From positions 29,078,001-29,142,000 of the forward strand of contig OZ116704.1 in the NCBI GenBank assembly GCA_964199315.1: a DNA stretch of 64,000 bases, in the 5' to 3' direction. How positions within the stretch are numbered: the first letter of the stretch is position 1; each line of letters opens with the position of its first letter. Positions 2,793-57,149 of this stretch are shown one piece after another. The notes under the pieces were generated by a model that was given only the letters and a program-made list of their open reading frames with translations, was not told the origin of the DNA and ran no database searches. The translations under genes were made by a program, and so were the position numbers. This DNA comes from Orbicella franksi (taxonomy: Eukaryota).

Positions 2793-3865
2793 TTGCAAGA
2801 ATGACAGAAGAGACTTGTCGAGATCCTTATGTTCTGTTTAGCATAAACTAATATTAAGTTATAGGTTGACAAAGAGGAAATAACCTTGCCGATATTCAAA
2901 TCAGTTTTCAAGACATCTACAGAGCATTTGGTCTTGAAATTTCACCCATATTGTTATACACAATAAAATGGCTAGCCAAAACCACTATTAAATCCACATT
3001 AAAATAGACACCTACCTGAATTATTTACAACTGTACAAATTTTTCATTCACAAAGGTTAGTGAGAGGTTTTGTACATGCCGTTATTTTAAGAAACAACAT
3101 TGACGGAAAGAAGTTTCTCTGCAATGCTCAAAATAAATGATATTGTATCTGTTGCATTATAGTCACAAAGCGATTTTACATAAGCTTATTAGCATTTACA
3201 AGCTTTGATACTGAACTCTTAAATAAAGATTCCAAGAAGATCTCGTTACGAGTATATGAATAAACAAGTGAAGGTACTTGTCAAAATATATTTTCAAGTA
3301 CAATCGAGAATGTCAACGCTAATAAAATTCCAATCAATCTCTCTAAGAGGACATACTTGCAAGAGAAAATGTGTCTCGCCTTTAATCGAGTTTTAAGCAG
3401 CATAAAATGCAAAAATATTGGCTTGTTTGTCGTTGAAGTCTTGTTACCCTGGGAGAAAAAATCACTTTCTCGACTATGAACCACTTAATTAAGAGATCTT
3501 TACGCCGAACGTGTGAAAATTACTCGGCATAAGATAGATACTGTATTGGCTTAATAACCTCCTACAACATGCTCCAATGCGTGTTTATCCACCGTAAAAA
3601 CACAAAACACGACGGGGATCTGTCTGCAACGTCGTTTACGCACAGAAAATGAATTACGAGTATAAACTTATCGAAGAATTTACTTTGTTATTACCTCTCG
3701 CTTGCCTCCTTCTTCCACATTTCGCTTGAGTGTTTCTCTTGTCAACGGGGAAGACGACCAGCTTTCCACATAGTAACCGCTTTCTTTCTTAAATTTGCTT
3801 CGTGCAGTGGTAGGCGAAGGAACAGGAATATTTGGCCTGCTAGAGTCGTTCGGGAAATTGTACAT
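2793..3865 (-). CDS. Candidate 5' exons of an unidentified gene, probably continuing toward the window start
   Basis: Possible first exon 3865-3695 (MYNFPND...EEGGKRE, donor GAG|gtaata). A small exon at 2833-2793 has a clean acceptor and donor (HKDLDKSLLSFLQ|gtgagt). I could not join them into a phase-consistent model or recognise a family. Confidence 0.3.
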
Positions 3866-4782: not shown

Positions 4783-4941
4783 NNNNNNNNNNNNNNNNNN
4801 NNNNNNNNNNNNNNNNNNNNNNNNNNNNNNNNNNNNNNNNNNNNNNNNNNNNNNNNNNNNNNNNNNNNNNNNNNNNNNNNNNNNNNNNNNNNNNNNNNNN
4901 NNNNNNNNNNNNNNNNNNNNNNNNNNNNNNNNNNNNNNNNN
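4783..4941. other. Assembly gap (159 N)
   Basis: Run of N. ORFs crossing it are not meaningful. Confidence 0.99.
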
Positions 4942-8613: not shown

Positions 8614-11600
8614 TCATTTCTTAGAACGCACAGAAAGAACAACGGTGCTGTTTCATACTCACGTGAAATTTATTGAGGACTTTATATTTTGAAAATTGCT
8701 CCACCAAACATTTTGCTTTCTCTTGAAACATCTTGATGGCAGGCTCGCTCCAGCGAGTTCGTTTCTCAATCAGCTCACCGTTCTTATCAAATTTTCTCCC
8801 TGACAGCGATAAAAAAGAATGTGTTCTTTATGATGTCCAAATTCAATGGCAAAGCAGATGGATACTGAGCGAGGAACATTTTACGAACTACTGATGAGGC
8901 ACACTCTTATCACGTGAACATTCTCACCTGTCGTATCAAAGCCATGCGTAAGCTCGTGACCGAGCACGTGACCAATGGCGCCATAACTCAAAGACCTAAA
9001 ATGAAAGAACACATGATTCCTAAACATTCCAGGAATGCAGCGTGTCCTCGAGGTAGAGGCCTGGAACTAGTTGAATCAAAGGATGGATGACTGGATAAAT
9101 CACCATCCAGTGGATCAGAGCACAACAGAAACGGAACCGAACCGTATTTTTTTTCGAGGAGTGGTCGAGCAATTACCGAAAAACATTCCTGCACAGCAAA
9201 AACTGCTTTAAAAAAATGGGCAAAGGGAACCATGGGAAAACAATCGTGCAAGAGCTGTCTGCTGTCCAGGTCCTGCATTTTTTATGTTAAGAAACATTCT
9301 TACACAAGCTGTTGCCCACCCAAACAAATCATGCACAACCTAAAGGTGAGAAAAAATTTTGTGCCCCAGAAAATTGCTCACCCCATCCCCCTCAAAAAAA
9401 TAATGGTCCATCCCCTTACTCTGGTGGACAAAGTGGAGCTAGTTTTGTTATTTCTTATCCGATGAACAGCTCCACCCACTCTTTGAGCAACCGATGTCCA
9501 AATTATGGCTCATAATTTCGGTAATATCTGTTACCTTGGTATGTCGTTGGCATAAAAGAATGGTGGCTGCAGAATACCAGCTGGAACCACTGTAGAGATA
9601 AACAAGAGACACATCAAAATATGTTATACTATGCAATCGTTTTTTTTTTTTCAATACGATTAATTGCGTATGCACTCACCTTCATGATAAACATAAACGT
9701 CCCTTACTATTTACTGACAAAATAGATATTACATTTAAGTAATGAGCCTTTATTTTGAAGTCGTTATGAAACATTCATGCACTGGTTTATGTGGCCCGGG
9801 AGGGGGACCCCATATAAGAAAGATGGGGGTGTCTGTCGAACATTTTAGGGGTTAAATACGCGGTTTTAGCACTTCTTGGGGTGTTCAGCCTGAAAAGTCC
9901 ACAGCGAGAGCTTTTGCGGTACCTTAACTAAACCTGACAAAGGATCTGGTGTTGTTGTTATGGACAAGGACGAATACTTGCGCTTACTAGCTGAAGCTTC
10001 CATAAACGATCTCACCAAATTTAGATCGGTCGACCCGATGAGACCAAAAAGCAGAGGAAGACCACCCAAGCACTATCACCCTCTCCTACAAAAGGCGAAG
10101 GACTTAGATTCACTTGTTCGTCGAATTCTCCCTACTGAGATTGCAGACTCTGTCCGTCCGTCTGGCTCAAGGTTAGTTCACCTTTACGGTTTACCCAAAA
10201 CACACAAGGAAAAGCTAGCTATGCGAGCCATCTTGTCAGCTACACAGACTTACAATTATGCGCTGGCGAAATGGTTAGATGACAAGCTTAAACCGCTTGC
10301 TATTAATCATTACACGATAACCGACACCTTCGAATTTGTGAACGAAGTCCATTCATTGACACTCAAAGACGGTGACGTCTTGGTCTCCTATGATGTTTCC
10401 TCATTGTTCACCAATGTACCCCTTGAAGAAACAATACACATCCTTGCTGACAAAGCATTTGCTAATGACTGCTTTAATCAAACGCACCACCTTAATCTCA
10501 GCAAACAGGACCTAATCCATCTCCTAGAAGGGGCAACAAAAGATCAACTTTTCCTGTTTAACGGTCAACTTTATGAACAGACCGACGGTGTCGCCATGGG
10601 CTCCCCGCTTGGACCCCTGCTCGCCAAAGTCTTTATGTGTAGCATTGAGGAAACCCTGGATCGTGAAGGAAAGATGCCCAGCTACTACAGAAGGCATGTC
10701 GACGACACACTGACCATCATGCCTAACCAAGCATCAGCCAACAACTTTCTGGAGACTCTGAACGATTGCCACTCCTCTATTAAGTTCACAACGGAGATAG
10801 AAAATGACCGCATGCTTCCTTTCCTTGGAACGCAATTGCTCAACAAATCCAACCACGTTGAGACAAAGGTTTATGTGAAGCCCACAAACTCTGGTCTCTT
10901 GTTACACTACAAGAGTCATGTTGACGATCGTTATAAACGCGGCCTACTAAAAACTATGCTGGATCGTGCGTTTCGACTTTCTTCTAACTGGACCTACTTC
11001 TCCGAAGAATGCGATCGTCTCAAGTTGTTGTTCTCCCGTCTTGAATACCCAGATGACTTAATTAATTCAACCATAACACGCTTTATTGCCATCAAAGTTT
11101 CTGAGCAACCTGTTCCTTCACCGACTGACAACAACAGTCCAGAGCCCGTTCGGATTGTCCTACCATTCAAAGACCAAGCTTCAGCTGATTTTCTTCGCAC
11201 GCAACTGAAAGATCTTAGCACGAAAACAAACACCACCATCCAACCTGTTTTCATCAGCCACAAGATTGAGCGAGACCTGAAATCACGTGAAGTCAAACCG
11301 CCAGTCGTTAACCAACAGTCCCTTGTGTACCATTTTAAATGTGACCTGTGCGATGCAGGTTATGTTGGTTTTACGCGTCGGCACTTGCACCAACGCGTCG
11401 ATGAGCACAAAAACCCATCGTCATCAATTGGAAAACATTTTCGCGAGGAACATTCTTTGGCCCCTAAAGATCTTACTAATATCTTTTCGATTTTAAAGAA
11501 ATGTACAACCAAGTTTGACTGTCTTATTTTCGAAATGTTTTTTATTCACGAACTGAGACCAAGTCCCAATGTACAATCTGACTCTATTCGTGCGAAAGTT

Positions 11601-33000: not shown

Positions 33001-36000
33001 GACACATTTGCAACCGTGTGAACTTCAAATGGTTTGTTTCAACTTGAATTGCCATTATGTAACCATGGCAATACTAGCAAACAGTTAGCGCGAGAAGGCG
33101 TGAGGTGATATTGCCCGCGCGCAGGTTCAGTCGCGGGGAGGGAAGGGAAGGGGACATTTGTCACGCCAGAGCCCGCGCGTGTTCGATTAGCGATGACCAA
33201 ACGTGCCACGTTCCGGTAAAAATCAACAACCGGAACCACAAAATACTAGATTCGTGTTCTGTGGTAAAAATGACGAGTGAGTTGCAGAGAAAGATACATT
33301 GAGGCAAACGATTTTACTGAGTTAATCCGCGAGATGTATTCCTGTAAGAAAACGCACAGTTACGTTAGTAATTTGTCGAACGTGTTCACGTCCGCGGCAA
33401 GGAATCGAAAGACAATGTGGAAACATGAACGAAACGACACTGCCTGGCTTCTAGCAAAGCCTCATCCCGGCTAAAACTCCTACATAAAACCCATAGCTAG
33501 TATTTTCAGTTTTCAGTGAATAAACTTTTCAGAATTCAAATTTTACGGAGATTGTTCAAGGTCGGGTATCTTTACCAAGATTGCATAAATTTCCGACGTG
33601 ATTGTGTACCCGAAAAGATGGCCGGCACGAACGATATGAAACTGTAAATTTAGTTTACGAAATGATAACCTAGGGCTGGCGTAAAGTTGTAGGTGACAAA
33701 CCTCTTTGCTACATTTTACAGGTTAACTCAAACATTACGCTACCTGTTTGGTTGGTTGGTTGCTTGGTTAGGTTGTTGCCATTCCTTGCCAGTTCCTGTT
33801 CAGTTACGATAGTTAACGTTGACCCATTTTTAACGAATTTAGAAGTTGAATGACACAAGAAAACATGACGATGACACGAGAATTGCTAAATGAACATTTA
33901 GATTATTATTAACTAAACACAACTTGACAATGTGTCATTACAGTCTACGACAGGCCGGATTTATAATTACTTACCGTACGGAGCCGTGTGTACTGCCCTG
34001 ATATTCTGCGATATCAAGTCCCTGACCTGATATGGTTACGGTATCATGCTCACTTGGCCGAATTCGGGCAAGGTAAATATCTAATCGTACCTTTGTTCGG
34101 CGGCGTATCAAGTTCGTTTGATCTCGCCATGGGTATTTTGGCTTCACTACTTCTCGCCAAAATACGAACCATACCTCGACCAATTCACAATCACCTGATA
34201 TGTCACCGATGCGTACAAAAAAAGGCACGACTAGGTATAAAAATTACGATGGCACGTTAGTATAATTTGCGGCAGGTGTGTTATAACAAAATGCGACAGG
34301 CATTTTGACAATCCGCGACAAGGTATGACAATGCTAAAACACAAAGTTGAAAAATACGCCCGCAAAGCGTGCATAGTAGAAAATGGACGGACTGGACTTT
34401 GCTAGAACATCATGGAGAGCTTGGAAAGGCGTTTCGGATTTTAGGCTGCCTAAAGTCGTTCTGTCGTGCTCTAAGGTTTAGCTTAGATTTTCGCAGTGTC
34501 TGTTTCCACTAAAGATCATTAATGGGCAGTACAAAATTAATAGGGCATTGGGCAAAATGCTAGATCGGACATTACCCTTATGCAGACAACAGTCATATAG
34601 GTCACAGTCGCTCTCAAGTTCTTGCTTTATTGAGTGAAAATGAGACCAGCTCGCTTTTTAGAATAAACATGTAAGCTTATATACTATACGCTAAACATCA
34701 TTGCTATTGAAACCCTGTCGCTATTGGGGATATCATAATATGTGTGATAAATATAATAACATTGTTATAATAATTAATGATAACAAATATTTGGACAATA
34801 ACGAGTCGACAGAGATATGATCACAACAAACTTTTTTTTAATGAAAACAGTTATTTAATGTAGTAAGGATGCGGCTAAACGAATACTTTTTGAAACAAAG
34901 CAGAAACAAATCTTGCTTACGTTTGACATATCTAGAATTAACATATATCGGAAAAATGGAACAATTTTAAGTAAGTGGCCAACTTTATTAATACATCAAT
35001 ACTCGAAGCCGAGCATCAACAATTATCTGGCTTTGTCAAGGATTGGAATAACAAACTTATAGATCCAATAAGAACTCTTTAATATTGCCTAATTTTGTTT
35101 TCATGGAAATAAATTCGTTGTTATTACATGAAAGAAACTTCATACCATTTTCAAATCAAGCTATGATAAATTTAAAAGATTAAATAGAACCATAAAATGA
35201 AAAATATACACCCATGTATGCTAGAATTATAATACAATGAATTAAATCGCTGAATCAAGGTAAGAAACAGGTAAATGCCATGTTTCATTTGAGCTATGTA
35301 CATGAAAGTTAAAAAATAAACTCAGAGGGAAAGAGCCATTAGATTACATACGATTTCGACAAAAGTCCTTGGAACACTTTGAAAAACAGAACGAAAAGCC
35401 GTTTAGTCGATGTTCAACGAAATAGACGAGTATTTTTTTTTTGTTAAAACTCCAGATTTATTTAACAAGGAATATCCACAACAGTCCCGAGGAATCTTGA
35501 CGAAAACTGTAGAAAGCCATTTTAATTTGTATATTTGTAAGATCTGTTGTAAACTTGCATAACTTGAAACAGACAATACAACCGTTAGCCAAAGAACGTT
35601 TCTTCAAAGATGTTACTTACAAAAGCGAGGACTTTTTAACGGCTGTTGAACTGAACATTTGGATTTTATATTTAACACCCAGTCATAGAAGCTACCTTAA
35701 ATGTAACGGTTTAAAAATGCTCTCACTTCGACAATATTCAACCTGGTGTGTTAGAACTTCATGCAGTTATGTGAATTTAGCGTCACTCAATTCTGAAAAT
35801 CACATGGTAGTTTCATGTAAGTGATGATTATCTCACGTCAGGGAGGTCATACAATTATGATGTAAAGTCCTTGTTCATGGTCCGCAACAGCGCCGCCTTA
35901 CATTTTGGTAAAAACCTTTTTTCGATAGCTGTACACGTGAATTCGCTACTTTCTTCAAAAGTTAAGCAAAGCAAATAAAAACAGTTTTCCCAAGCAAACA

Positions 36001-36684
36001 TATACACAAAACTTAGTATTGTACCCTAGCAAAATTTCGAAAATATACATTTTTTAAGTAAAGTTTTTTTTACATATTTAGCCTCCATCTTTGGCGTTTA
36101 ACGCGTAAAAAAGCGAAATAAAAAAGCAAACAAACAGAGAAGTCAACTGAGATTGATGGTCCCTTGAGAAAAACTCAAAACCTTTCTATTTGAATGTGGC
36201 ATTAATGTTTACTTTGCAACCAGGCATTCTACTCAATGATCGTTCTTGTGAACCGAACAGCATAACGGTTTACCCAGCGCATCGTACTGCATTTAAAACA
36301 AGCTTGATTCTCCTTAATTTGACACAAATCGATAAAACGTGCATTTAGCAGCAAATAATTCCATTTAAAGGTGACTCAAAGCTAAGCGAAAACATCTATC
36401 TTTCTGATACAGAGAATTTTGCGTTAACATCATCATTCACAATTCAAATGAAGACGCCTCTTTATGTCCCCACCTGTTTTAAACAGACCGTGCACGTTTT
36501 CCCCATAATTTTGAATGGCATCAATAATCTCATCTTACACTTAATTTAAATAGAATTACTCTTATCCTCTCCGACGCTTTTCCAGAACGGAAAACTCCCT
36601 TGTATTTCTCTCGCTACCTGAAGAACTCTTGACGCCCATATCTCTGGTGTTGGAAGTTTCAATTCCGAGTTCCGAGCCTTAATT

Positions 36685-39600
36685 TCAAGTCCTTTTCGTC
36701 TTGTCGGGTATCACTCCCTTCATTTGCAGAGACTCTTTATAGTGTGTATGTAAGTGAGTCTGTAAACTCCCTGACTGAGAGAACGCTTTAGAGCACTGCC
36801 AACATTTATAGGGTTTCTCGCCTGTGTGCGTGCGCATATGGCGTTTCAGGTCCGTAGAGCGTGCAAATGCCCTAGAACATTCTTGACACTTGTACGGTTT
36901 CTCTCCTGTGTGGTTGCGTAAATGCCTTTGAAGGTCAGTTGAACGAACGAACGCCCGCGAACATTGCGTACACTTGTAAGGACTCTCGCCTGAGGGAAAG
37001 ATAGGGAACAATTTCAAAATCACAATTAAGCGATAATGTTACTATAATGAACAACCAGGGTGCACACCTGTGGGGGGGGGGGGGGGGCTCCCATATAAAA
37101 AGGACCGGGGTGGTCGTCGGAAATTTTGAAAAGAATTCCTGAGAGGTACCACGACCGTGTTTTCTGAGCGTAGCTTGAAATTTTTTTCACCCCTAGGAGA
37201 TACCAATTCTAAAACAACACATTATCTCCAGTCTTATTTTTCTCGGCTCAACACCCTAAAAGGTACCGCCAAAGCTTCCTTTATGGACCTTTTGAGACTG
37301 AACACGCTAAGACGTACGCTTTTTTAACCCCTTAAATGTACGACAAACTCACTCGTCCTTTTGATATAGGCGTGCCCTCCCGGGGATGCAAAATGCCACA
37401 ATGGGTTTTGTTCCTTCTATGTTACATACCTGTGTGGGATCTCATGTGTCTCCTCAGATAGCAAGGGTACTGGAAAGCTTTACTGCAGTACGAGCATTTC
37501 CAAGTGCGGCCAGTTTTATCCGGACACACATACTTCACATGACGCTCCAGGTAGCTCTCGTATGCGAAAATCTTGCCGCATTTGTAACATGTATAGCTCT
37601 CATCATCTTAGGGATGAGAAAGCAAACAACATCTGGTTAAAATCAAAGGAAACGACTATAGATCATTGAGTTCGATAATTCCATCACGAGAAGTTTCGAA
37701 AACTAAACTTAGATGGAATGTTATTCGGCGAATGGCAACCTTGTGCCCGCTTTCAAGAGAATAGCCCATTTAAAGGTTTGCTTTGCTTGTTTACTTGACA
37801 AGGTAACGCAACGTGGATGCGAGGCAATTTCGGGCAGAAACGACAGAATTGCCCAAAGTTGCCTCGCATCCACGTTCGACTATTGTTATGCAAATGTCTG
37901 TTAAGTGTAGAAAGGCTAGGGATATTGAATGAAAATGACTCTGAGATAAATTTGTTGTGCGTGGGTCAAGTAAAGCTACAGATTCAAGCAACTTGAGAGA
38001 TCACCAGTGCTGCTGGTCAAGAAGAGTCAATGGATTGTATACAGCCTGTATACAGCGGATTTCGTCCAGAAATCCGATAAAAAAATTCACCATAGACCAA
38101 GGATCATCGTCCTGATGTAAAACAAAATTCTCATAACATATTAGATGTGAGAATTTTGAAGAAATGTGTTACAAAAGTAAAGAGAGTTTATATTTCCATC
38201 AAGGAAAACTTGCCGTACCTGATTCTGTTCTACTAAGCTTTTTCTCAAGATACCATCTGAACAGTTTTGTTCGCTTGTCTTCCTTCAAGTGGACACTTTC
38301 CTGAAGATATTTCGTGATCTCTGTTTGAGACACGCCGGTCTCTTCAATCAGTTCTTTTTCCAAAGCCTTGTTGTTTTCCATGAACTCTCTGATTTCACGT
38401 CCGATAATTTCTTCTTTGCCTCTGAAAAACAGTGACGTCATACATTCAGCCAATGGGCACGCGAAAACTTTGACGGTCATCAGCAAAGTCACTAAATTCT
38501 AATCTTATTGCTTCGAAAAGATAGGAACTTTTAAGCGTTACAACACAATTTTAGTTTGTTTTGTTAGCATATTTGAAGTGGTCTTTCAGTCGATTTAGAC
38601 ATTTTTCTGAGATTGATCAAAAAATGATAGAATTAAAGCCTCAATGGAGGAGTACCCATGGTTCGTTCAAGATGAAAAGAAATTGCATTGAGTTGAAACT
38701 TTTAAAATTTTGCATGGCCTATCACCTAAGTACCTTTCAGATTTAATTAGTATTCAACAGCCTTCGTCCTACCATTTGAGGCGCAACGACAATGGTCGTT
38801 TGTTGGAAAGACCAAGTGTGAAAGCCAAGAAAACATTGGGAGACAGAGCTTTCCAGGTAGCTGCTCCTTTCCTATGGAATAAGCTGCCAAGGTCCGCGCG
38901 CGAAGCAACGAACTTAGAATCTTTTAAGACTTGAATTAAGACATTTTTATTTAAGGAATCATTTCAGTTATCTTAGCATATCTATACCTTTATTTGTAAT
39001 TATCTTTTACCCATTTAATGTAAATATTTTTTATGGTTTTGATAGGAAGATTTGTAAAATTTTAGTTATTAATTATTGTTGTGATGCGCTTTTGAATATT
39101 TTATAGAAAAGGCGCAATACAAATAATAAATGTTAATGTTAATGTTAATGTTAAATGTTCTCTGTCAAACGTACATAAGCCAAACTTAGGTCAATTTTTA
39201 TAAAATGGTGTCTAATCCTGTGGAGCCAAACCAAATGTTTTGTAGCTTAGATTTAATTTTTAAAATAAAAACTGTAAGTTGAAAAATACAGATATCAAAG
39301 ATATAATCGAACCTCTCTACAACGGTCACCTTGGGGACAGAGTAAAGTGGCCGTTATAGAGAGGGGGTGTAACATTAAACACGGACCAACGAAGCGCGTT
39401 ACGGATCACGTTTGGTGGCCTTTTACATTAAAAATGGGCTTCGTATACACCGTTTCTCAGTCACTGATAAACTGGCCATTGTGAAGAGGTTATTTTGGCA
39501 GTCGGGACGCGTTTAGTGGCCGTTGTGGAGAGCTGGCCGTTGTTGAGAGGTTAAAAAGGAGACTGAATGTATGGATTGTCCGCCGAGACCAAAAACGTGA

Positions 39601-42208
39601 CGTGTAGAGAGGTGGACGTTAGTGGAGGCTCGACTCTAAAGTAAAAGCTGAAAAAAGCTTTGAATTTTATGATACTTACTGCAACATCTTTTCCAGTTCC
39701 TCTTCCAGTTTGTGAAGTCTTGATGAGTTATTTTCATTCATGGTATTAACTGATCGTCTCGCTGCTTGCTTTTTTCTTTCCTTCAGATCATCACACTTTT
39801 CCTCTGCAGTTTCCTTGTCTTCAACTTTGACTTGTTCTCGCCTTAAACTTACGAAGCTGTCGCTAACACGCCGTTTAAACTTTGATTCGTGGACTTTACG
39901 AGGCTCTCTGAAAGTATCATTGTTTAGTTCGGCTTCATGCAATTCGCTGCTGTTGGTATCCCTGTGATCTACATTAACGTTCTTTGCACAAAACTCGTAG
40001 TCCGCCCGCCGCAGGCACAGCTCCGCAAGCGTGTGCAGTCCGCGTGTGTCAAGCGCGGGAAAAACAGACGGTTGGTTCCCGCCATTAGTGACGCGGGGCA
40101 CTTGAGAGTTTGCGGCGGTTTCCAGGTTACACTGAATCGCCACGTCGCCTGAAAAAAGATTTAAAGTTTTGAAACAGTCACTCTTGAAGGCTTTAAAAAA
40201 AAATAAAAAACTTAAATTCTTACTTGTTTTCCTGTCCATGATCAATCAGGTACCATCACAGATGTTATTTAAGGAACGGCAGGGTCAAACCAAGGCAAGA
40301 TATAAGTTTTTCACAAAAGATTTGCTATTGAAAGCGTTTCTGTCACGTAAAATATCTCCAAATGCGCTTCGCTATTTTTTAGGCTTTAAAAGTTGAACGT
40401 TTCGAAGCCCGTTTGGGTTGATGCAAACTACTTTTGGCAGGTACTTCTTACAAGATCCGAGCTGTAAAATTCAGCGGTTTCTGAATTTGGTGTTCCATTA
40501 AAAGACCTGCAAGCTTCAATCCTGGCTGATTTTCTAACTGAAACCGGCTCGGAGTGGCCAAAAACAAACTTTTCCGTCGAAGCGCCACCGAGTTTGACAA
40601 GTAGTTGAATCTGTTTCCAAGAGAAGCGTTCTTATTTGAGACCTTCTTAAATGGAAAACCGCTAAGATTGGTTGTTTGTTTGTTCCTGTTGCAACAAAGT
40701 TAGCCAAATGACAACATACCGTAGTGTTATCTTACCTCAAGTTTTGCTTTTAGGGTGTCTTCACGTGGGATGACGTGATGCCATGAAATTTTACCTCGAA
40801 CATATCCAATCTAACCTTTTCCTATCGCAAATTTTTTCATTTTGTTTTCAAACGAAAAGCCAGAAGTTATAAATACTTTAAATTTCGGTATCTGGCCGTT
40901 AAGATATTCTATTGTCAAATTGCGCGTCGTAAATATATGCGAGGATAAGATTAGAAATGCTCTCTCCAACAGTAATTAACTCAACTACATAACCCGATAA
41001 TTATATTATCGATAAGAAAAAAAAAATTGTAAGAAAGATATTTTATCGGGGTTCCAGTGATCAAAGTTTTTCGCCGGCATGCGGTCACATTTCACAAGCT
41101 AACTATTACCATGGCAACCTAGACCAGAACCACTTGTTTCACATCAATCTTTTGATAGTGTAATCTCAATTACGTTATTCAATAACAGAAATCTCTCCAA
41201 CTGCTTTGTTTAGCAAAAAGCCTTTGATTTTTAGGATATAAATCTGGATGAGAAGTTAAATTATGGCTCACTACTTACAAATCAAAGTGTTTTGCAAGAC
41301 TAGGTTCGTTAACACTAAGTCCGTTTTTCCAATCCAACAGAACTTAGTTACTTCCAATCTTTTCAGCGAAATGAAAGACCATGGACTTCATTACAGCCAA
41401 AAAGTCAAAAACGACAAAATAAGCAAAGCTTAAGCTAGCATTAAACGTGTTTCTCGGAGCGTGAAGATCTTTTCTTATCCCTATATTGAAGTCCAGGGCC
41501 TAACGGGTGGTCATGTCAACATAGTTAATCAACACAAACCGGTAATGCTTGATTCTGGACTCCTGTCCGGCTCTCCTTCCTCGATAACGTCCGATAACTC
41601 TTCATTATCTGTGAAAAAATTAAACAGCATTTTATGCGGTGTAGTTCGTAGAGAAATACGACGTAAAAGCTAGTTAACCGAGCTTGACAAACTAGCGCAA
41701 AGCTAAATTATTGATATCTGGTTGTGAGTTCACTACTTTCGCATACTCGCTGACTGAAGTAATCAGCGGTAACAAAAATCTCACTGAAAAATCTGCGCCT
41801 CAAGTTAAAAAAAAACCCCAGATAATTAACTCATTTCGTTTAATAAGACAATTACTTCAAATCTATGGATTAATTTTTTTTATTTACTTGTCAGACAGGC
41901 TGCCTTAATCCTGTTGAGTGGGTCGTGCTGACCCAACGAACCGCGGACTTGCGCCACAACAGAAATTAAAGAAGTCAAGTAAAATCAAATAAAATTCAAC
42001 AAACTTGAATTTAAAAACACTTTGGCGCAAATGAGAGCTTAACTCCATACTAAGTTTAATGTTTCTAAGCTTTGAAAACGCGCTGACCTTTGGTAATGAC
42101 AAGTTTCGCGGAGTCTGGTGTGTTGAAATAACAGCACAGGTACTTACCATCATATCTCTCCTTCCTCTTGTTGCGAGAGGGTTTTTTCACAAGGAAAGAT
42201 TTTGGCAT
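36685..42208 (-). CDS. Transcription factor with N-terminal SNAG motif, HNF1-type POU-specific-like domain and five zinc fingers (427 aa)
   Basis: Six phase-consistent GT-AG exons: 42208-42148 ([20 protein letters not shown]), 41608-41540, 40148-39680, 38421-38219 ([61 protein letters not shown]), 37606-37430 (ZF1-2) and 36989-36685 (ZF3-5 with TGEKPYKC linkers). Total 1284 nt with no internal stop. Confidence 0.88.
37072..37384. mobile_element. Uninterrupted copy of the MITE that is split at 9795-12023 (opposite orientation)
   Basis: The reverse complement aligns end-to-end with the two halves flanking the Penelope element. Confidence 0.8.
38700..39155 (+). mobile_element. L2/CR1-group LINE 3' fragment
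   Basis: Encodes [11 protein letters not shown]...[19 protein letters not shown]...FKTLIKTFLF, a typical L2 ORF2 C-terminus. Followed by an AT-rich 3' UTR and a (TGTTAA)n tail. Confidence 0.85.
39302..39638. mobile_element. Tc1/mariner-like MITE
   Basis: Degenerate inverted termini TA.A.TCGAACCTC / GAGGCTCGACTCTA, with repeated internal GTGGCCGTT..AGAG motifs. Confidence 0.65.
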
Positions 42209-44949
42209 ATCACCGTGGCGTCCTCGAGTTGTCCTTCAAACTAACCCCACTACTCATCTAGCTACAAGGCAACTAAGGAGAGGAATCCCTCCTTCTTGCC
42301 TCAGATGACGTTATCAGCAGATTAGCTTTCCCTCCATTCGCGTCTCTCCTACAACTCCTAACACCGCTCCATCACTCAAACGCGTTACCGATACTGCGTT
42401 GAGCATGCGCGCGCGGTTCCCTGTTTCAAAACAAACCAGAAAAAGCGTGCGTTTCTTGCAGAGGAAAAATCTACGACGAACGGGGAGGAATTTCAAATCT
42501 AAACGCTCGCGTTGCCGTATGCAAGAGTTCTCCAAACCCTGGACAAGAAAATTCGAAGGTGGTCGAGTGTTGTTGATGTTACCCCGCTAGCTGTTTGGAG
42601 AAATTTCCGACCGCCCAACCGGGCAGATTGAATAAGTCAATAATTACGTCACGGTCAGGCGTACGGTTAGGTAATAGAGTTGAATGTCTTACGCTTAGCG
42701 TCATGCACCAAGATTAACCACTCTCTCACTTCTACTCAGCGCAAATCACTCAAACTTCTTCCCTTTTCGAGCCAGCAACGTCTATCTCAAAGCGGTCAGT
42801 GTTGTGGTTAATTCCAGCCGTCGTAGACGCAAATTTTGACCCGTGTTGGAACTTGGAGTTCCCTGGTATGACACTTGGCGTTCACCGGTCCTTGAATATC
42901 CCGCGCTTGAGCCGTTTTAGCTGTTGACACGGTCTCCAGCGGCAGGCTAGTGTCTAGCTCGCAGGTGGCCGACAGAAGTGCGTGTCAACAATGAGCAGCA
43001 CCGTGTTCAATGTGATAAGATCAGAATAAATTGAACAACACTAGCCCAGCAACTTGGGTTAAGTACATCTGTTAAGCGCTTGAATTTGGGGTCGAAAATT
43101 GTCCTTGGTCACAAGTATGTTGTGTGCAATCCTGACATTCTCGATAAGGAGAGGTTTACATATGTTTGAATGGACGAAAAACCCGTGATTTACGGTTCCT
43201 TTGAGCTGTTTACAGTGCGTCTTTCAGGCGGTAATGGGTTAAACATAGCATACAAGAATCACTGTCATGACCATCGCTGAGAGAACGCAAACTTTTAGAT
43301 ATTTTTTTCTGTCTTCAGGAAATATAAACGCGAACGTAAGAATTCAACTGGTTTTAGTTGATTTAATCAGTTGAACTTTAAGGTTTTGCATTTGACATAT
43401 ACCTACAATATACGGTGCATGTTTTTTGAAGAATCAGATCGTTAAAAAGTTCGCCAGTGTAATAACTCAATATTGATTGAGCAAGTAGGTTTAATGTCCA
43501 TTCTCTTGAATTTAAAGAAAAAAAACCCGTTTAAAAGGCTTTCAGCAACGACGTGTATCGTCTATTTTCAGTACATGATTTTAGTAACATCATTAACCTT
43601 GACATCTCAAGAGAGAGTTTGGACAACTTTTGACAATTAAAATGTCAGGGGTTAACAGGCAATAAAGCCATTAACACAAGATTTAATCAGTGAAGAACAG
43701 GCGTCATGAGATTAGCTAGCAAAATAATCGTAATTCTTTGCTTTTATATTCAGCGAAGTTTCGTAGGAAATCTGAACTTCAGACAGGCTAAGAGAAACTG
43801 AAAAAGCTCTTGTTTATCTCGAGGTTCTCATATTTGTTGTGCCTCGTAACGGTTGTAATTTTTCTAGGCAGGTCTTTTTACTGGTTGCTTATTGGATCTG
43901 AGCTCGCATCATCGCCACCAAAACAAATTACGCTTGATTCAGTTCTCCTAGTCAGTGAAATAAAATAGTTTGCTGGCTCTTTTTCGTGATCGAACTGGAA
44001 GAACGAAAATGTTGACAAAAACTTGTACATCAGTAATCAAAAATCGCGTGTTCAATTCTTGTTACGAAGAAATGGCTAGATCTTGGACTAAAAAAACAGT
44101 AACCAAAACAATTGAAATAGTTTATAAAATATGTCTAACTCCAATAAGAAAGAGAGGTTTTCTTTATCAAATCTGACCCAACACTTTTGCCTTGAATTTG
44201 CCCGCAAAATATTCATTGTTACAAATACTCATAAGCAAGCCTGCGGAAAAGCTGTGCGATCCTAGCTCCGGAAATTTGATACAAATTCTTTAGTTTTTTG
44301 ATCATAACATTCTTTTCTTTTTGGTTAGATGACCGTGTGATTTGATCAGTGAACCGTGGAAAGTGTTCAATTAATGTGAATGTTTTCGTCGATTTTGTCA
44401 GTTACACTTAAATAATCCATTATGAGATCTAACGAGTTAAGGACCGTGGTAACACGGATGGATAGGCTTGGTTTTACCTGTGTTTAACAGCTGAAGAACC
44501 ATTTCAGTAAAATTTTTAACGATTTTTGCCTCAGCAACTCGAGATTCTGGTAAATAATTTTGCAATTTACATCTCCCATGAACAATTTTGCGAAGTACTG
44601 AATGTAAAGAAGACTTAATTTGACAAAGAAGGGAGAAATACATTTATTCAACGCATGTAATCTGAATGAAAGTCTAAACTGGTCTTTCAATTTCCTTTGA
44701 CAAATTGAAAATAGTCTTCTCTATTTGACGCACGGAAAAAATCGCATCTTACTGGTACCTGCCAGGCAAATTAACTGAGCATGCGCTTCGGTGCAGCGTG
44801 CTCACAACGTTGATTTCCACACAAAAGAAAAGCGAACCGTCCCTTCTAGCGACATATGAGGAGCGGAAACTGTTTCACTCCTTTGCGCAAGTGTTAAAGA
44901 GATTTTAGAACTGATGCTGCCCAAGGAAGCGGGCCATGTTGAAGTGCAT

Positions 44950-47084
44950 ATGGCGTCTCACCGACTCTGTCTCCGGTTGTGCTTCCTTGGTTTAGTAACT
45001 TTATCTCTGTGCTCCGTTGTTTTCATAATGACAAGAGGTTAGCATTGCAGTTTATTTTCTTAATTTCTGTCCAGGTAATTCACTTTACATCGTCTAGGAA
45101 TTGGTGGGTGATCAGCGCCTTGCGTCGAAATAAAATGATCGCTTATTAGACATTCATTGAAGCGTTCAGTAAGCTACTTGAACTATTCAAAGTTTCGACT
45201 TCGCGCGTGGGACAAAGCGGGGATGTATCGTTAATCTGAGAGATAAGGAGGCGAACTTGTACGAACTTGTACGCTTTTCACCGTATAGCTCGATACAAAT
45301 GCTTTCGGACAGCGAACACATGGAGCTAGCAAGTTCGGGACGGTAAATGCACTTGCGCAAATATTGTTTATACAATACCTGTTAAACAGACAATGCGTGA
45401 AATAATTACTACCCTACTGCAGTGTTTAGGTCTGGGTTTTTTGGTGCTTAATTCTTGAACTTCAAAATCTTTTTTTCATATAGCGTCCGTTATAACAGAC
45501 ATATTGACCTGCTTGTAAGCCATGTCGCTACTTTCTCTTCGCTTCGTGTGTAAAACTATCGCTCGGTCAGGTGACCTTGATTTGGGCAACACCGCACCGA
45601 CATTCGGTCGCCGTAGTGCGATTCTAGATAAGAGAAACAGTGGTTTTGACAGTGGGGTAAGATTGTTAAGTAAGTCTACGCAATACAAAAAAAAAGTGAG
45701 GGTAAAAGTCATGAAGAATGAAAAGAACAAAATACACGCGAACACGGAAACCAATGAAAAATGTAATTTTGATTGTTTTTCATGGCATTCCGCTCAAAGC
45801 AATATTTATCATACACATATTTACCTACAAATTAAATAAAACTCAAATAATAGCTTACTGAGGAGTATGAAAACACAAAAGAGGCATTTATATACAAAGA
45901 AAAAGAGGGCTGGTTAAAATTGGGAGCAATTAAGAAGTTTTACGCAGGAACAATTTTTGAAAAATTAGGCTAATATTTTCAAGATTCTACGCTTTTTTGA
46001 GATGGCGACCACTTAGATTTAAAGTAATGAAGATACTTTGTTTCCAACAGGTTATCTGTTTATCTACATAAGTCCAGTAATTGAAATAGCTGATGAGGAC
46101 AGCATTCTAATCGATCAAAAACGCGAATTACAGAACAGTTACAACCGCGGAGGGAACAACAGCGAAAGAAATTGTAAACACGACAAGTTCGACGACATTT
46201 TACTGGTTATAGCTTTCGTTGAATTTCTTTATGACTCTATTCCTTATCTGGAGAAGCTCTACAGACATCGCTTTCCAAATATTGTTTATTGCGGACCTGT
46301 CAAACCGCCTAAGGAAGGCCAGTACAAACTTATAGTGGTCTCTATGCTTCATGGGGTTACAGCTTACGAGTGTCTGAGTACTGCAGCAAGGACACTACCA
46401 CAGTTTACGGGTTATTTATTTATGAGGAATGATCTGTTCTTGAATATTTGGAGCATTGCAAATTTTAGTCGATCACGGATATGGCAAAGCTCAGGACAGC
46501 TTGGTAGCCAGGTCATGTTTCAGCAAACGCGTGATTCCTGGATCTGGTGGTATACGCCGTGGGGACTCAAGGCCTGCGAGGAGGCTTATAAAGAGCTTAT
46601 TTACCTGAATGACGCTTACAAGCGTGCAATAATCGATAGCAAGGGACAGGAAGAAAGTTCGTGGGATGTGGAAAATTCACTGAATGCTTTGCTATGGAAT
46701 GGACGTGGTTTGAACATGTGTTATCGGGGATTCTCAAATCTATTCTACATTCCTTCACAACACGCAGTTGCATTTCAGAAACTCTCCGCCGTGTTTCAAA
46801 AGCACCAAGTCTATATGGAGATAGCGGTTCCGACCATGATAAAAATGCTCGAATTGTCCGAAAAAACCGAGCAAGTGACAGGGGTGGACATCGGTTCGCT
46901 TTATGGAGAAGAGCGAGCTCAGAAGGACGCTAGCTTGTTTTGGCGGCATTTTTCACCGAACACTAGCTATATAAGGCCTGTTGTTCTAACTCGTAATTAC
47001 TCTGTTGACTCAAAGCCAAACGGGGTGGTAGAGGTTTTGTTAAAATGGTTAAATCACATTGACTGTTCAGAAGGGCTGTCATAG
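44950..47084 (+). CDS. STELLO/DUF288-like putative glycosyltransferase, type II membrane protein (373 aa)
   Basis: Exon 1 44950-45037 (MASHRLCLRLCFLGLVTLSLCSVVFIMTR, TM, phase 1) joins exon 2 46051-47084. ILLVIAF...LEKLYRHRFPNIVYCGP, GYLFMRNDLFLNIW, LFYIP and MEIAVPTMI resemble the C-terminal half of STELLO-type proteins. Confidence 0.75.
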
Positions 47085-48143
47085 CTCACCGAACTAAGAC
47101 TTCGTTACGTGAGCGAATGACCATATATGGTTTGCGCTGTGGTTTAGAAAGTCTCGTCGCGCAAGAAATGTTGAGAAGACAGACGCGCAGGTATAACGTT
47201 TCCCGCCAAAATTTGACTGTCATCCCGACTGTTTAGAGGGGCGTCATAGCACACCGAACTTGGAAAGTCCTGGAGCAAGGAAAGCTGGGAAGACATACGC
47301 GCGGTTAAGTTTCCCGCCATAATTTGACTGAGCTACAGTCGTCGTCGTTTCTTCATATTTCCTTGGCACATGCGTTGGTCGGCAACCGAACCTGCCACAT
47401 TGTCGCAACTTGAATTCAACTCACGCGACAACTCATTCAAAGTACTCTTCAGTTGACATTTTGAAAATTCGTTAATCAACATTCAAAACCTTTGCGATCG
47501 AGTCAACTGGTAACTGACTCTGAACCAAGGGTGGGCAGCCTTACAGTCATAACCCAGTCACTGTTATATTTAACGTAAAATATACACGAAAAATGATTTA
47601 TTAACCGAGTTAATTGTTGTGTAGGCGTGCGCTCACAGGTTGATCATTAAGTGATTCAAGTTTGACCCCGAGGGTTTTTTTTGTGCAGATAGTTGGCGAT
47701 AGACCAGGTCTCAATTCTACTATCAAAGTTGATAGGCAGACTCCCAATAACAACCGAACACCCGAGGGAGCACTATCGAGAGCCGAGCGAGAATGAATCA
47801 ACTTTTAAACATAGAACAGTGATGAACCTGATTTATTGACGTTTTGATTGGTACGTGATTACAAAGGAGCTACGTCACGGTTTGCGCATCTTAGAAAAGT
47901 TGAGCAAAAATTTTCCAAGTTCCTCCTTTGTAATCCGTGTTAATCTTCTCCATCATTAACCATCTTTGTTTCTTTATGGTTTATTATTATCTCTTTGGTG
48001 TTTTTCTATCTGAAAATACCTTGACTGAGCTCCTTTAAGAAATAGCGCTCACACTCCCAAAGACTTGTGTCGATCGAAAGTCGATGCCTGATTAGCTAAA
48101 TAGATCGAGAGTTTGCCACATGATCAATAGACTGGTGACTAGT

Positions 48144-50271
48144 TCATGTTCCAAGGGAGGAAGACTGGTGACCAACGTGTTGAAACAGCTCCTTTGTCCA
48201 AGTATTGCTTTTATCGTCCAATATACTCATTCCACCTCGCGATTGAAGATAAATATACAGCAGCCAATCACATGGCATTTCATTGTAAAACTGTTCTAAA
48301 TACCTGCCAATTAATCGCAAATCGTCGTCGCGGATAAGTTTTCCTATAAAACCCCATCTGGAGAAAGCCAATATACCCCATTGTTTGCCGGCTCTGAGGT
48401 TGATAAATTCCCTTATTTGACTCAAAGCATTCTGCATAACCGTAACGTCATCTTCAAGATGGAGATAATACTGGGCCAGGCCTTGACTGTAATAAAACAT
48501 AAATACATAGTCCATAGCCTGCTTAGAACGCCAATGCATTCTGTCTGGACCGTCGTCAAGGGTCGATTGAAGTCCTGTTAGACGAGGGTAGAACGAGGAG
48601 GGAGCTGAAATGACGTGAATTAGATTCATGTCCAAGTATTTACCAAAGTTTGACCGCAGATCTTCCATGACGTTTGTCCGAGCCGACTCTTCTGAGTCGG
48701 CAAGAAAGACGACGATTAAGATATTTTTGAGGTCTTCCTCGGAGCTGCCGTTGATTATGAGTGAGTTTAAAGTTGCCACCAGATAACTTTCGGTCTTGTT
48801 TTTGAAAGTTCTTTGAACTGTGGGAATTCCAATGGTCAGAAAAACTGAAACAGAGAAGATGGCAAATAGAAGAGCATTCGCACATAAAAAAATAAAATAC
48901 TTGCCGTTCGTTTAGCTTAACCATCCGAGTGTGAGGCATTTAATGAGAAAGACTGTTATAGATGGACTGAACATTTTGTAGCCCAAGGAATGCAGGGAAG
49001 ACACACAGGCCGCTAAGTTTCCCGCCAAAATCTGACTGCAGTTATATAAACCCACCCAAAAACCCTAAATGTTCCGAGGCTTTGCAAGCTTAACACTGAC
49101 AACTAAGATTTTACGGTAATGGTTACGGTAAAACTTTTGAATGGACCAGAATAACAATGGCAAAGTAAGTACCTTTTTTCGTGAGTGGTTTTCCTATTTC
49201 TCTGACGCTAGTTTTAGTGATGATTTCTCCACCTTTTGAACATGACACAAAGTCATCCAGACTGGCTGTTTGGGCACTCTCACCTTAAAAAACGTACATG
49301 AAAAGCATGGTAAAAGATGCACCGAGAAATGGAAATAAAGCCATCCATAAGGACGACGAAAGGCCATTTCCAAGTTGCCTTTTGTCGCTGTGTCAAAGCG
49401 AGTCTTCGTACGAAACATTCATATGAAAATGTGTTCCGCGTACAGGTTTATTTTCATGTAAATCATACTACTTTCATTTGAAAGGTTTTTGCACGAGGAC
49501 TCGTTATTAAACCGAGGCACAAGGTAAAGCTCTGAGATGGCCTATTGCTACCATACAGACTTATTGTTAAATCTCTTACGACGGTCGTAACGCTACAGTG
49601 CTGACAAAAAGCGAAAAATACTATCGTCTCACGTAGTGCAGTAAAAAAGAAACAAGAAAGTATGTAAAAACTATGTAAAAAGTATGCAAGCAATGGTAGG
49701 TAGTGCTAGCAGGAGTAAAGTTGGGCTCATCCTTTTTCTGATTGGCTAAAACTTGCAAGTGCGTCTGTTCAATCATAATAAGAGTATATCGCATTGTGAT
49801 TGAAATATTGATATTAACCGCGGGAAAAGTCGCGAACCCAATTCACCGTTGGCTTGGTTTCGCATCTGATTGGTTGAGAAGACGTGAAGTTTAATCTAAT
49901 TGGTCAAACCTGTTTTGACGAATATATTGAAGTAACAGGAAATCATAAAATAAGCAATCAAAGGCTGCATTTGTCAATCAAATCAAAATCCCATGAAAGT
50001 TGTCTCGGTAGTGTTTGTAAGTTAAAGTACTTACACAGGCTAAGATACTGAAGTTTCCAGTTCAACTGAAGCATTAACATCGCAAGAACAATCAAAAGAA
50101 CATTCTTGAAAGATGAAGTCTTGCCTCTTGAATCGGTAAGAAACAACTTTAACTAGAAGGAATGAAGCAAACACATAAGTTTGATGACTGAGGAAACCGC
50201 AGAATAAGCAGACAAAAATATTTCGGTGCTTGTCAGTAGTATTGCTTACGTACCTTAACAATCCATCTCAT
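48144..50271 (-). CDS. MGAT4-family (GT54) alpha-1,3-mannosyl-glycoprotein 4-beta-GlcNAc transferase-like protein, about 315 aa
   Basis: Exons 50271-50254 (MRWIVK, least certain), 50152-50035 (TM), 49283-49173 and 48844-48144. Motifs: LTIGIPTVQR..SYLVATLNSL, WRSKQAMDY, YYLHLEDDV, FSRWGFIGKL, PCDWLL, LFQHVG..SS. Confidence 0.88.
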
Positions 50272-55257: not shown

Positions 55258-57149
55258 ATGCCATGGAAATGGCCGCGTTGTGGTTTAGGCTGGCTTTGTA
55301 TTCTGTTGATCATCTGTAGTGCCGTTACTGTGATCTCTTCGTATTGTGTAGCTCTCTCACATGGACACATCTACCCGTTCCTTCCAGCGATCAGCGAAAC
55401 TGGAGTTTTGTATCCGGAGAAATACGTTTTCAGGGAGTTAGCTAATTTAACGGCCTTTCTATTCATCTCCAACGCGTTCGTTCGTTTTATGCAGTATAAA
55501 CTTGTGGCTGAGCAGTGTAGAGAGGAACACGTGAAGCTCAATCGCCTTAACAAATTGGCATTTGTAGTCGCCATTTTAGCGGGTGTCGGAATGACTTTCG
55601 TGGCCAACTTTGAAATTGAAAAGGTATGCCAAGAAACTTTTATTATTTTACAGAGAGGCTTCTTATTGACTTGTGTGACAGGATGTTTGAATATTATTTT
55701 GATTAGTGTTTAGAGGTCTTTTGGTTGGGCTATTTTTTTTTTTAAAGAAATTCATTTTACCAGATATCATGTTACGGATTGTATTGAAACATGAACAGGT
55801 AATAAGTAAACAGTAGCCTCTATTTGGCGCGGAAATATGGGCGGATATTTGTCCGCGGACGTTGTCTGTTCCGAGAAGCGAACAGTTTTCTGAGAGCGTG
55901 GCTCGAGGAAAACTATGAGCTTTATAGAACAGATAATGTCCAAGGACAAATATCCGCACATATTTTATTTTCGCGCCATTGTGCAGTGTTTATCCTTCAA
56001 ATATTTTTTACAACACGTGCAGTTTTGAAAATTGGGGAATAACACTCGGATATGCCCCAGATTTAGCTGGGACATATTCAGTCACGTGACGCGTTTGGAC
56101 CAATCCCACGCAAGCGAAACTTTTTGATGGATTATAATTACTGATATCAAGCCCTAGCTATCTAATCCTACATGAACGACGCTGTGTCAGACCTAATCGC
56201 TACTGCTGTGGATTTCGCCGGATCAACTGAATTCTAGCCTTTAGTTGGGGTTGGGAGAGAGGGGAGATTGTATTGTCTTCCTAGTCAAGACACAGGCTTG
56301 CTCTCACGGTGTCTCCGCTTCCAGGAGTATCAACGGGTACCAGAGAATAGTGCGGCAAACTGGCCAAAATGTCGGTCGGGGTGAGGCTAATGATTTGGTG
56401 GACTGGCAACCCATAAATGGGGGTGGGGCCGGTTGCAACACTCTTGAGAGAGGGGCTTTGGGGGTTGGCCTCTCCTCTTTTTTTATTTTTTGAAAAAGAC
56501 AAACTCTTTCTTATTGGAGTATGAATCCTTTTTATAGGCAAGAAAAGGCCTTTCTTCCCTTTTGAGAAAATCTGTATCTGTTAGTGTTTGATAGAGAACA
56601 GGGGCACTGTGAGCGCATATTGTCCAGCTCAAGAACACAAAGGGGAGGTAGTTTGGATCAAATGTTTCACTTTAGCCATTATGGCTTCATATAGTCCCTT
56701 GAAATCGAGTTGTGACAAGAGTTTGTATATATTTACAGAACTGGTCAGTCCACGACGTCGGTGCCATGACAGCATTTATCAGCGGTCTTTCATACTGTTG
56801 GTTACAATGTGCAATGTCTTACAAGCTTCGAGACCACGGTGTCATCAATAGTTCAGCGGTGTGCCATTCAAGAGCCACGCTCTCTCTCATAATAACTTTC
56901 TGCGTCATGATCTTTGGCGCGTGTCAGGGCAAAGCTAATATGGAATGGGACCGAGTTCGGCCTCGATATCACTTCCTTGCCAAACTCAAGTGGAGTCCTC
57001 AAGATCCCGGATATTTGTACCATGTGATATCCAGCGTGGCCGAATGGAGCATGTGCGGAGGAATGCTTCTGTTTATGTTGACGTTTGCTCAGGAGTTTCA
57101 ACAAATAGAGATAACCTCTGATATCTCGTCCACAGATTATTGGGAATGA
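55258..57149 (+). CDS. DRAM/TMEM150 (Frag1/DRAM/Sfk1) family membrane protein, 258 aa
   Basis: Exons 55258-55623 (donor AAG|gtatgc) and 56739-57149. Six hydrophobic segments, with motifs GHIYPFLPAISETG..YPE, VANF, SVHDVGA, SSVAEW and TFAQEFQ. Confidence 0.9.

Follow-up and report, generated by a model that had tools for sequence, protein, structure and literature searches.

Textbooks present POU-specific domains and their HNF-type counterparts as modules that work only when paired with a homeodomain. A locus of the coral Orbicella franksi raises the question of whether such a domain can be built into a transcription factor of another kind and, if so, what it contributes there. The locus lies in a stretch of 64,000 nucleotides (nt) of contig OZ116704.1 (assembly GCA_964199315.1, positions 29,078,001 to 29,142,000), hereafter the window, whose first nucleotide is position 1 for all coordinates given below. 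A first-pass annotation of the window had proposed a protein combining an N-terminal SNAG motif, an HNF1-type POU-specific domain, and five zinc fingers. The corresponding gene was found on the minus strand at positions 42208-36685. We consider it probable (about 0.6) that this gene belongs, as the coral orthologue, to an undescribed family of factors, apparently restricted to cnidarians, that captured part of an HNF-class gene, and in which the fingers would set DNA specificity, the SNAG motif would recruit corepressors, and the POU-specific-like domain would act as an accessory module.

Structure and transcription of the gene

The gene comprises six coding exons totaling 1284 nt, and all introns have GT..AG borders. 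The spliced exons encode a protein of 427 amino acids (aa) with the N-terminal sequence MPKSFLVKK. The features of the gene, including its untranslated regions (UTRs), are as follows, with the confidence of structure prediction given as the predicted local distance difference test (pLDDT).

42209..42400, minus strand: 5' UTR, contiguous with exon 1; a 3723-nt RNA contig covers 42148-42400 at its positions 3295-3547.
42148..42208, minus strand: coding exon 1, with the start codon and the SNAG motif; the joint between 41608 and 42148 was present in three RNA runs.
41540..41608, minus strand: coding exon 2, 69 nt, an acidic, weakly conserved linker with pLDDT below 50; joints between 40147/8 and 41539/40 and between 41608 and 42148.
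39680..40148, minus strand: coding exon 3, 469 nt, mostly predicted disorder with one conserved motif; its 3' end (about 39729-39680) encodes helix 1 of the POU-specific-like domain.
38219..38421, minus strand: coding exon 4, 203 nt with 67 whole codons, preceded by a phase 2 intron and followed by a phase 1 intron; encodes the last four helices (2-5) of the HNF1-type POU-specific-like domain.
37430..37606, minus strand: coding exon 5, 177 nt, phase 1-1; fingers 1 and 2 (Pfam zf-C2H2).
36685..36989, minus strand: coding exon 6, with fingers 3-5 (Pfam zf-H2C2_2, 89 bits), a short basic tail, and the TGA stop codon at 36687-36685.
34614..36684, minus strand: probable unspliced 3' UTR of about 2.1 kb, deduced from the 1886 nt of the 3723-nt contig that lie past 36500; an AATAAA at 34631 fits this end.

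Assembled transcripts of three independent coral RNA libraries were mapped to positions 36500-42400 of the window. The contigs revealed exactly five joints, all located at the predicted exon borders and each reading CT..AC on the plus strand. Each of two single contigs, of 3723 nt and 3223 nt, spanned all six exons, joining the POU-specific-like exon to both the SNAG exon and the finger exons. The six-exon splice and the in-frame 427-aa protein proposed in the first-pass annotation were therefore confirmed at the RNA level. Transcript contigs extended approximately 176 nt upstream of position 42400, and their lengths suggest a 5' UTR of approximately 370 nt. Since the exon with the ATG also contains an in-frame TGA 30 nt upstream of it, the SNAG-like motif is positioned at the true N-terminus of the protein. 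An additional run, analyzed as raw reads, provided seven matching reads, every one on intronic repeats.

Broken or truncated public models of the Actinia, Paramuricea, and Pocillopora orthologues could be taken to mean that exons of different genes had been assembled into one, or that the HNF1-like exon is a pseudo-exon. This explanation is hardly credible, since the six exons are joined in single RNA contigs from independent runs and since the architecture recurs in more than 14 species, among them Hydra, where an mRNA contig displays the same exon plan on the genome. An annotation or assembly artefact was ruled out by the six-exon contigs and by this mRNA-to-genome mapping.

Two introns contain stretches of high RNA contig depth (200-1100), at approximately 38697-39560 in intron 3 and at 37075-37320 in intron 5, where the contigs have loose ends in unrelated sequence; these stretches are probably fragments of dispersed repeats or transposons. 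Intron 5 also contains a poly-C/G run near 37075-37095. The closest transcriptome-derived protein is otherwise nearly identical to that of the window but differs from it by a 12-nt indel in exon 1 (4 codons, LKEE), just after the SNAG motif, which is an allelic or species difference.

The POU-specific-like domain and its origin

The middle segment of the protein had been aligned to the HNF1 POU-specific domain without gaps, and profile and fold comparisons led to the same assignment. The exon-4 peptide (67 codons) matched Pfam HNF-1_N, a profile of 175 positions with a curated cut-off of 29.7 bits, with an E-value of 3.4e-10 and a score of 41.1 bits over profile positions 121-174. Adding the upstream helix encoded by the end of exon 3 increased the score to 48.5 bits (profile positions 76-174). 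Orthologues from an octocoral (47 bits) and from Hydra (34.6 bits) scored above the cut-off, and that of Clytia (23 bits) below it. In phmmer searches of the PDB, the exon-4 peptide matched HNF1A (6e-6) and HNF1B (1e-5) without gaps. A profile built from 17 sequences of the family matched HNF1B and HNF1A with E-values of 2.5e-10 and 3e-10, respectively, gapless over 69 residues, the next match having an E-value of 1e-3.

The AlphaFold2 (AF2) model of the domain (pLDDT 85) contained five helices. Comparison of this model with the PDB identified HNF1A and HNF1B crystal structures for all of the top 11 matches, with template modeling (TM) scores of 0.72-0.79 and root-mean-square deviations (rmsd) of 1.3-1.5 Å, followed by generic Cro/C1 helix-turn-helix (HTH) proteins with TM scores below 0.5. 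The top 16 matches among Swiss-Prot models were all HNF1A, HNF1B, or HMBOX1, the highest identity (28%) being observed with HMBOX1. Overall, superpositions on the POU-specific domains of these three proteins had TM scores of 0.72-0.81 and rmsd of 1.3-1.6 Å. Classical POU proteins (Oct, Pit, Brn) were absent from the top 50 PDB chains and the top 30 Swiss-Prot models listed. Searches of the ESM Atlas returned generic zinc-finger clusters only (by feature) and generic phage or bacterial HTH folds only (by shape). The match to HNF1 is thus much stronger than chance would give. These comparisons indicate that both sequence profile and fold assign the domain to the HNF class specifically, in agreement with the proposal of the first-pass annotation, for which profile searches and structure comparison had been suggested as checks.

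The domain thus resembles those of HNF1A, HNF1B, and HMBOX1 by its five helices (TM scores of 0.74-0.81, identity of 21-28%), by a gapless alignment over approximately 70-80 residues, and by an intron between the first two helices whose residue and phase match those in HNF1A. In contrast to the members of the HNF class, the coral protein has no homeodomain and no match to the dimerization segment. The domain itself also differs from those of this class, as it is acidic to neutral, has an unconserved recognition helix, and lies between a SNAG motif and five C2H2 fingers. Pfam searches detected no homeodomain in any coding piece at E-values up to 10 or in residues 1-275 of four orthologues, no SET domain in any coding piece, and no Pfam POU domain in the coding pieces or in residues 1-275 of the same orthologues. 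As previously proposed, neither a homeodomain nor a SET domain therefore separates the POU-specific-like domain from the fingers. No homeodomain was present around the gene among the scanned open reading frames (ORFs) of the window of at least 110 aa, which matched unrelated families only. The N-terminal dimerization segment of HNF1 was undetected, the HNF-1_N alignments of the four orthologues covering positions 49-174, 76-174, 82-174, and 90-174 of the 175 profile positions. Membership of the HNF class was rejected owing to the lack of both the homeodomain and the dimerization domain. Oct1, Pit1, and Brn similarly combine a lambda-repressor-like HTH 'specific' domain with a second DNA-binding module. 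In this classical class, however, the POU-specific domain has four helices and is followed by a POU homeodomain, whereas in the coral protein an additional N-terminal helix is present, as is typical of HNF1, and the POU homeodomain is missing.

Exon borders provided information on the origin of the domain. The structural alignment of the model with HNF1A is gapless (model residues 6-83 with HNF1A residues 95-172) and places the Gln codon that is split in the coral gene (CA before the intron and A after it, 2 + 1 nt) at HNF1A residue 109. The borders in HNF1 were deduced from published HGVS variant names of human HNF1A and not from any HNF gene of a cnidarian. According to the names c.326+1G and c.526+1G, the last base of exon 1 (c.326) is the second of codon 109, and that of exon 2 (c.526) is the first of codon 176. 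Mapping of a Hydra mRNA contig to the genome revealed that the POU-specific-like domain is encoded there by a discrete exon of 206 nt, in phase 2 before and phase 1 after, followed, as in the coral, by an exon of 177 nt in phase 1-1 for fingers 1 and 2; the finger region of Hydra has one intron more. The intron between helices 1 and 2 is therefore located at an identical residue and in an identical phase in the coral, in Hydra, and in human HNF1A (intron 1). The intron that follows has the phase of HNF1A intron 2 and is located one (coral) or two (Hydra) codons further, in a linker that cannot be aligned.

Since the intron inside the domain occupies the same residue and phase as intron 1 of HNF1A, we infer that part of an HNF-class gene was captured at the DNA level, rather than by retrocopying or convergence, and we regard this origin as well supported. 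In this scenario, the POU-specific-like part would have been taken as genomic DNA from an HNF-class gene and then joined to a SNAG/zinc-finger gene. The captured piece would have included at least the end of one exon and the next exon, as the homology to HNF1 begins in helix 1, which is encoded by exon 3. With an intron placed as in human HNF1A, this gene is a well-documented example of domain capture at the exon level giving rise to a transcription factor specific to one lineage. HNF1 and HMBOX-like genes both exist in cnidarians (PMC1779571). One match was named 'FLJ21616-related', FLJ21616 being an old name of HMBOX1.

A vertebrate HNF1B-like database protein contains the exon-2-encoded POU-specific segment twice in tandem. 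The borders of the repeated unit coincide with exon borders, and the repeat looks like a duplication introduced by assembly or annotation rather than a biological one.

SNAG motif, zinc fingers, and distribution of the family

The first 20 residues of the protein were compared with the whole PDB and matched SNAI1 only. The best match (2y48_C, E-value of 0.029) is a peptide crystallized with LSD1-CoREST, and 3w5k_B was also retrieved. The likeness to SNAI1 runs past the core motif over the first 19 residues (KPS..RK..Y), and every full-length orthologue has the motif in the form MP[RK]SFL[VLM]. Together with initiation at the first ATG following the in-frame stop codon, these matches establish the N-terminal SNAG motif. 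The five C-terminal C2H2 fingers were also recovered by Pfam, exon 5 encoding two of them and exon 6 the other three. Finger 1 is a C2HC variant, whose final zinc ligand is provided by the Cys of HVKYVC, and fingers 1 and 2 are near-invariant across Cnidaria. The helix residues are RSTDLQR in finger 3, RSTDLKR in finger 4, and QSGSLQT in finger 5. The gap between the POU-specific-like domain and finger 1 (approximately 10 residues) is conserved in length. In the full-length AF2 model, the N-terminal regions are disordered.

The otherwise disordered N-terminal half contains a second conserved motif, encoded in exon 3 (window positions 39860-40040, minus strand) and located at residues 80-102 of the closest transcriptome-derived protein. 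It reads W.YE.EKSYWF in medusozoans, with a near-invariant Y97 and an invariant E98, and is predicted to form a helix with low confidence. No Pfam match was found for this motif.

By its MP(R/K)SFLVK N-terminus, disordered middle part, and C-terminal C2H2 array, the protein resembles Snail/Slug, Scratch, Gfi1/1b, Insm1, and Ovol. It differs from these repressors by the folded POU-specific-like domain inserted between the SNAG motif and the fingers, by its detection in Cnidaria only, and by a Lys at position 3 of the motif in corals. The N-terminal SNAG motif combined with a C-terminal C2H2 array, as well as the resemblance to SNAI1 beyond the core motif in the first 19 residues, could indicate that the protein is a diverged member of the Snail/Scratch, Gfi1, Insm1, or Ovol families that gained an extra domain. 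This origin is improbable, because the fingers match SNAI1 (84.9 bits) and Gfi-1 (75.7 bits) with scores below those of generic poly-zinc-finger, CTCF, and ZBTB proteins, and because a word-based search with fingers 1 and 2 retrieved no relatives outside this cnidarian family. Furthermore, distinct Nematostella orthologues of Insm1 (PMC9020782) and Gfi1b (PMC9172639), each with six fingers, have been described. Membership of the Snail/Scratch/Gfi/Insm/Ovol families was rejected on these grounds, the finger comparison being one of scores rather than of phylogeny.

ZNF845 is a cnidarian-specific C2H2 factor required for cnidocyte fate, with six tandem fingers (Hydra XP_002158383.2; Babonis et al. 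2022, PMC9172639). The Hydra orthologue of the coral gene (XP_002157355.1 / XP_065644540.1) has five fingers, and neither a SNAG motif nor an HNF or POU-specific domain is mentioned for ZNF845. Identity of the two factors was rejected on the basis of the different Hydra accessions and finger numbers, the comparison being made by accession and description rather than by alignment.

The family was retrieved by searches started from an octocoral relative. The same three-part architecture was found in scleractinians (Oculina, Montipora, Pocillopora, and transcriptome-derived sequences), in the octocorals Dendronephthya and Paramuricea, in the anemone Actinia, in Aurelia (a protein from genome annotation), in Hydra vulgaris, and in Clytia hemisphaerica (XP_066924228.1). 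The search of other proteomes that the first-pass annotation had called for thus revealed conservation across Cnidaria. Proteins combining HNF-1_N with these fingers were cnidarian in every named case, and a search with fingers 1 and 2 only retrieved 18 proteins, all belonging to this family and cnidarian wherever named. An exhaustive phmmer search of 1.84 billion representative proteins with the exon-4 peptide led to 21 matches, corresponding to fragments of the family and one HNF1B-like protein. Within these word-indexed and single-sequence searches, the family is apparently restricted to cnidarians. Since the architecture and the exon structure are common to anthozoans and medusozoans, the gene dates to the stem of Cnidaria.

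Several public models of the orthologues are defective. The Actinia model (XP_031570901.1) skips most of the POU-specific-like exon, the Paramuricea model and one further model (P0054) start inside an intron, and the Pocillopora model has a false N-terminus and ends after finger 2.

All parts of the protein are known domains, and members of the family are already present, unnamed, in public databases with these Pfam matches, under automatic names only ('zinc finger protein 26/333/420-like' or 'uncharacterized'). A literature search identified no publication describing this architecture or family, although many subscription papers and supplements were outside the search and a mention in an atlas table is possible. 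This outcome agrees with the first-pass annotation, for which no described family with this architecture was known. The family is undescribed and built from known parts, in a combination of domains that is new and deeply conserved.

Proposed mode of action and surroundings of the gene

Conservation was determined from an alignment of 14 species. The fingers were the most conserved (93%), most columns being invariant from coral to Hydra, followed by the SNAG motif (83%) and the POU-specific-like domain (58%). Within the domain, the lowest value (42%) was observed for the equivalent of the HNF1 recognition helix (HNF1A residues ~140-150), which reads TIVDASRFLL in an octocoral and DKNEIKAFIE in Hydra. 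The conserved positions of the domain mainly belong to its core and turns (equivalents of F/Y122, T137-G138, W165-Y166, and K169), in addition to a family-specific NN pair. The net charge of the domain ranges from -6 to +1 across the family versus +6 for HNF1A residues 110-176, the last few residues of the latter segment being provisional.

Based on sequence conservation, the near-invariant fingers would probably set DNA specificity. By the classical recognition code, fingers 3 and 4 (Arg at -1, Asp at 3, and Arg at 6) would specify a G-rich GNG-GNG core, and the fact that the fingers hardly vary between corals and Hydra implies strong constraint on their set of targets. The free N-terminal SNAG motif would recruit LSD1/CoREST-type corepressors, as in Snail, Gfi1, and Insm1. 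By analogy with SNAG zinc-finger repressors, the factor is expected to act by recruitment of LSD1, CoREST, and HDAC to finger-bound sites. The POU-specific-like domain would be an accessory module involved in protein docking or weak non-specific DNA contact rather than a base-reading unit. This role appears more likely because the recognition helix is variable (42%) and the domain is acidic to neutral: if the module read conserved DNA beside invariant fingers, its reading helix should have been retained, and the variability of this helix argues against a conserved base-specific role.

The alternative is that the HTH of the POU-specific-like domain reads DNA and extends or modifies the footprint of the fingers, a bipartite recognition in which the homeodomain that accompanies the POU-specific domain would be replaced by zinc fingers. 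The fold is indeed the DNA-binding fold of HNF1A and HNF1B (rmsd of 1.3-1.5 Å). The T-G turn and the equivalents of W165, Y166, and K169 are kept, as are those of R131, Q141, K158, and R159 in anthozoans, and the domain is tethered to finger 1 by a short linker of conserved length (~10 residues). However, over the same divergence, the recognition-helix equivalent is 42% conserved versus 93% for the fingers, the positive charge of HNF1A (+6) is replaced by a net charge of -6 to +1, and hydrozoans lack the equivalents of R131 and K158. In addition, the POU-specific domain of HNF1 is dependent on its rigid interface to the homeodomain (PMC12412204), which is absent here. Bipartite recognition is therefore less probable than the accessory role that we favor. 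The pairing of a POU-specific module with fingers put forward in the first-pass annotation accordingly stands as a single transcribed and conserved architecture, and a DNA-reading role of the module is disfavored by the variable helix and the lost positive charge.

Other observations weigh against the overall interpretation proposed here, namely a cnidarian-restricted repressor acting through its fingers and SNAG motif, with an accessory POU-specific-like module. Several DNA-proximal positions of HNF1 are partly retained, Q141 in corals and K158/R159 in anthozoans, and a variable recognition helix may be compatible with DNA binding. The residue E132 of HNF1A faces the homeodomain, and its equivalent is conserved in the family, where it has no known partner. 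The full-length AF2 model contains no confident interdomain packing (pTM 0.26) and thus offers no hint as to the contacts of the POU-specific-like domain, favoring neither the accessory role nor bipartite recognition. Repression via LSD1 is deduced, again by analogy, from a short motif, and its position 3 is a Lys in scleractinians versus an Arg in most other members of the family and in SNAI1. Finally, the restriction to cnidarians is based on word-indexed and single-sequence searches.

A broader and more tentative proposal, to which we attach less than even odds, is that an HNF-type POU-specific domain was freed from its homeodomain in a stem cnidarian and has persisted for more than half a billion years beside zinc fingers. 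It would form there either a new composite HTH and C2H2 recognition unit or, with its original DNA-binding fold turned to another use, a protein-docking module, inside a SNAG repressor exclusive to cnidarians and possibly in control of a cell fate specific to them. ZNF845, another invention of stem cnidarians, controls the fate of stinging cells and offers a parallel. The pairing of a deeply conserved HNF-type module with fingers shows what this fold can do without a homeodomain.

The window contains two additional features.

9960-11609, plus strand: signature of a Penelope-like retroelement, a 549-aa ORF with RVT_1 and GIY-YIG endonuclease domains.
4783-4941: run of 159 N (assembly gap or masked sequence).

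The neighboring genes, which span 14090-18691 (minus strand), 20842-23378 (plus strand), 46038-48779, and 55258-57149 (plus strand), are unrelated to the transcription factor. They include M13 peptidase exons, a PA14/GLEYA-domain protein with a CHGN-like glycosyltransferase, STELLO-like and MGAT4 glycosyltransferases, and a Frag1/DRAM/Sfk1 protein.

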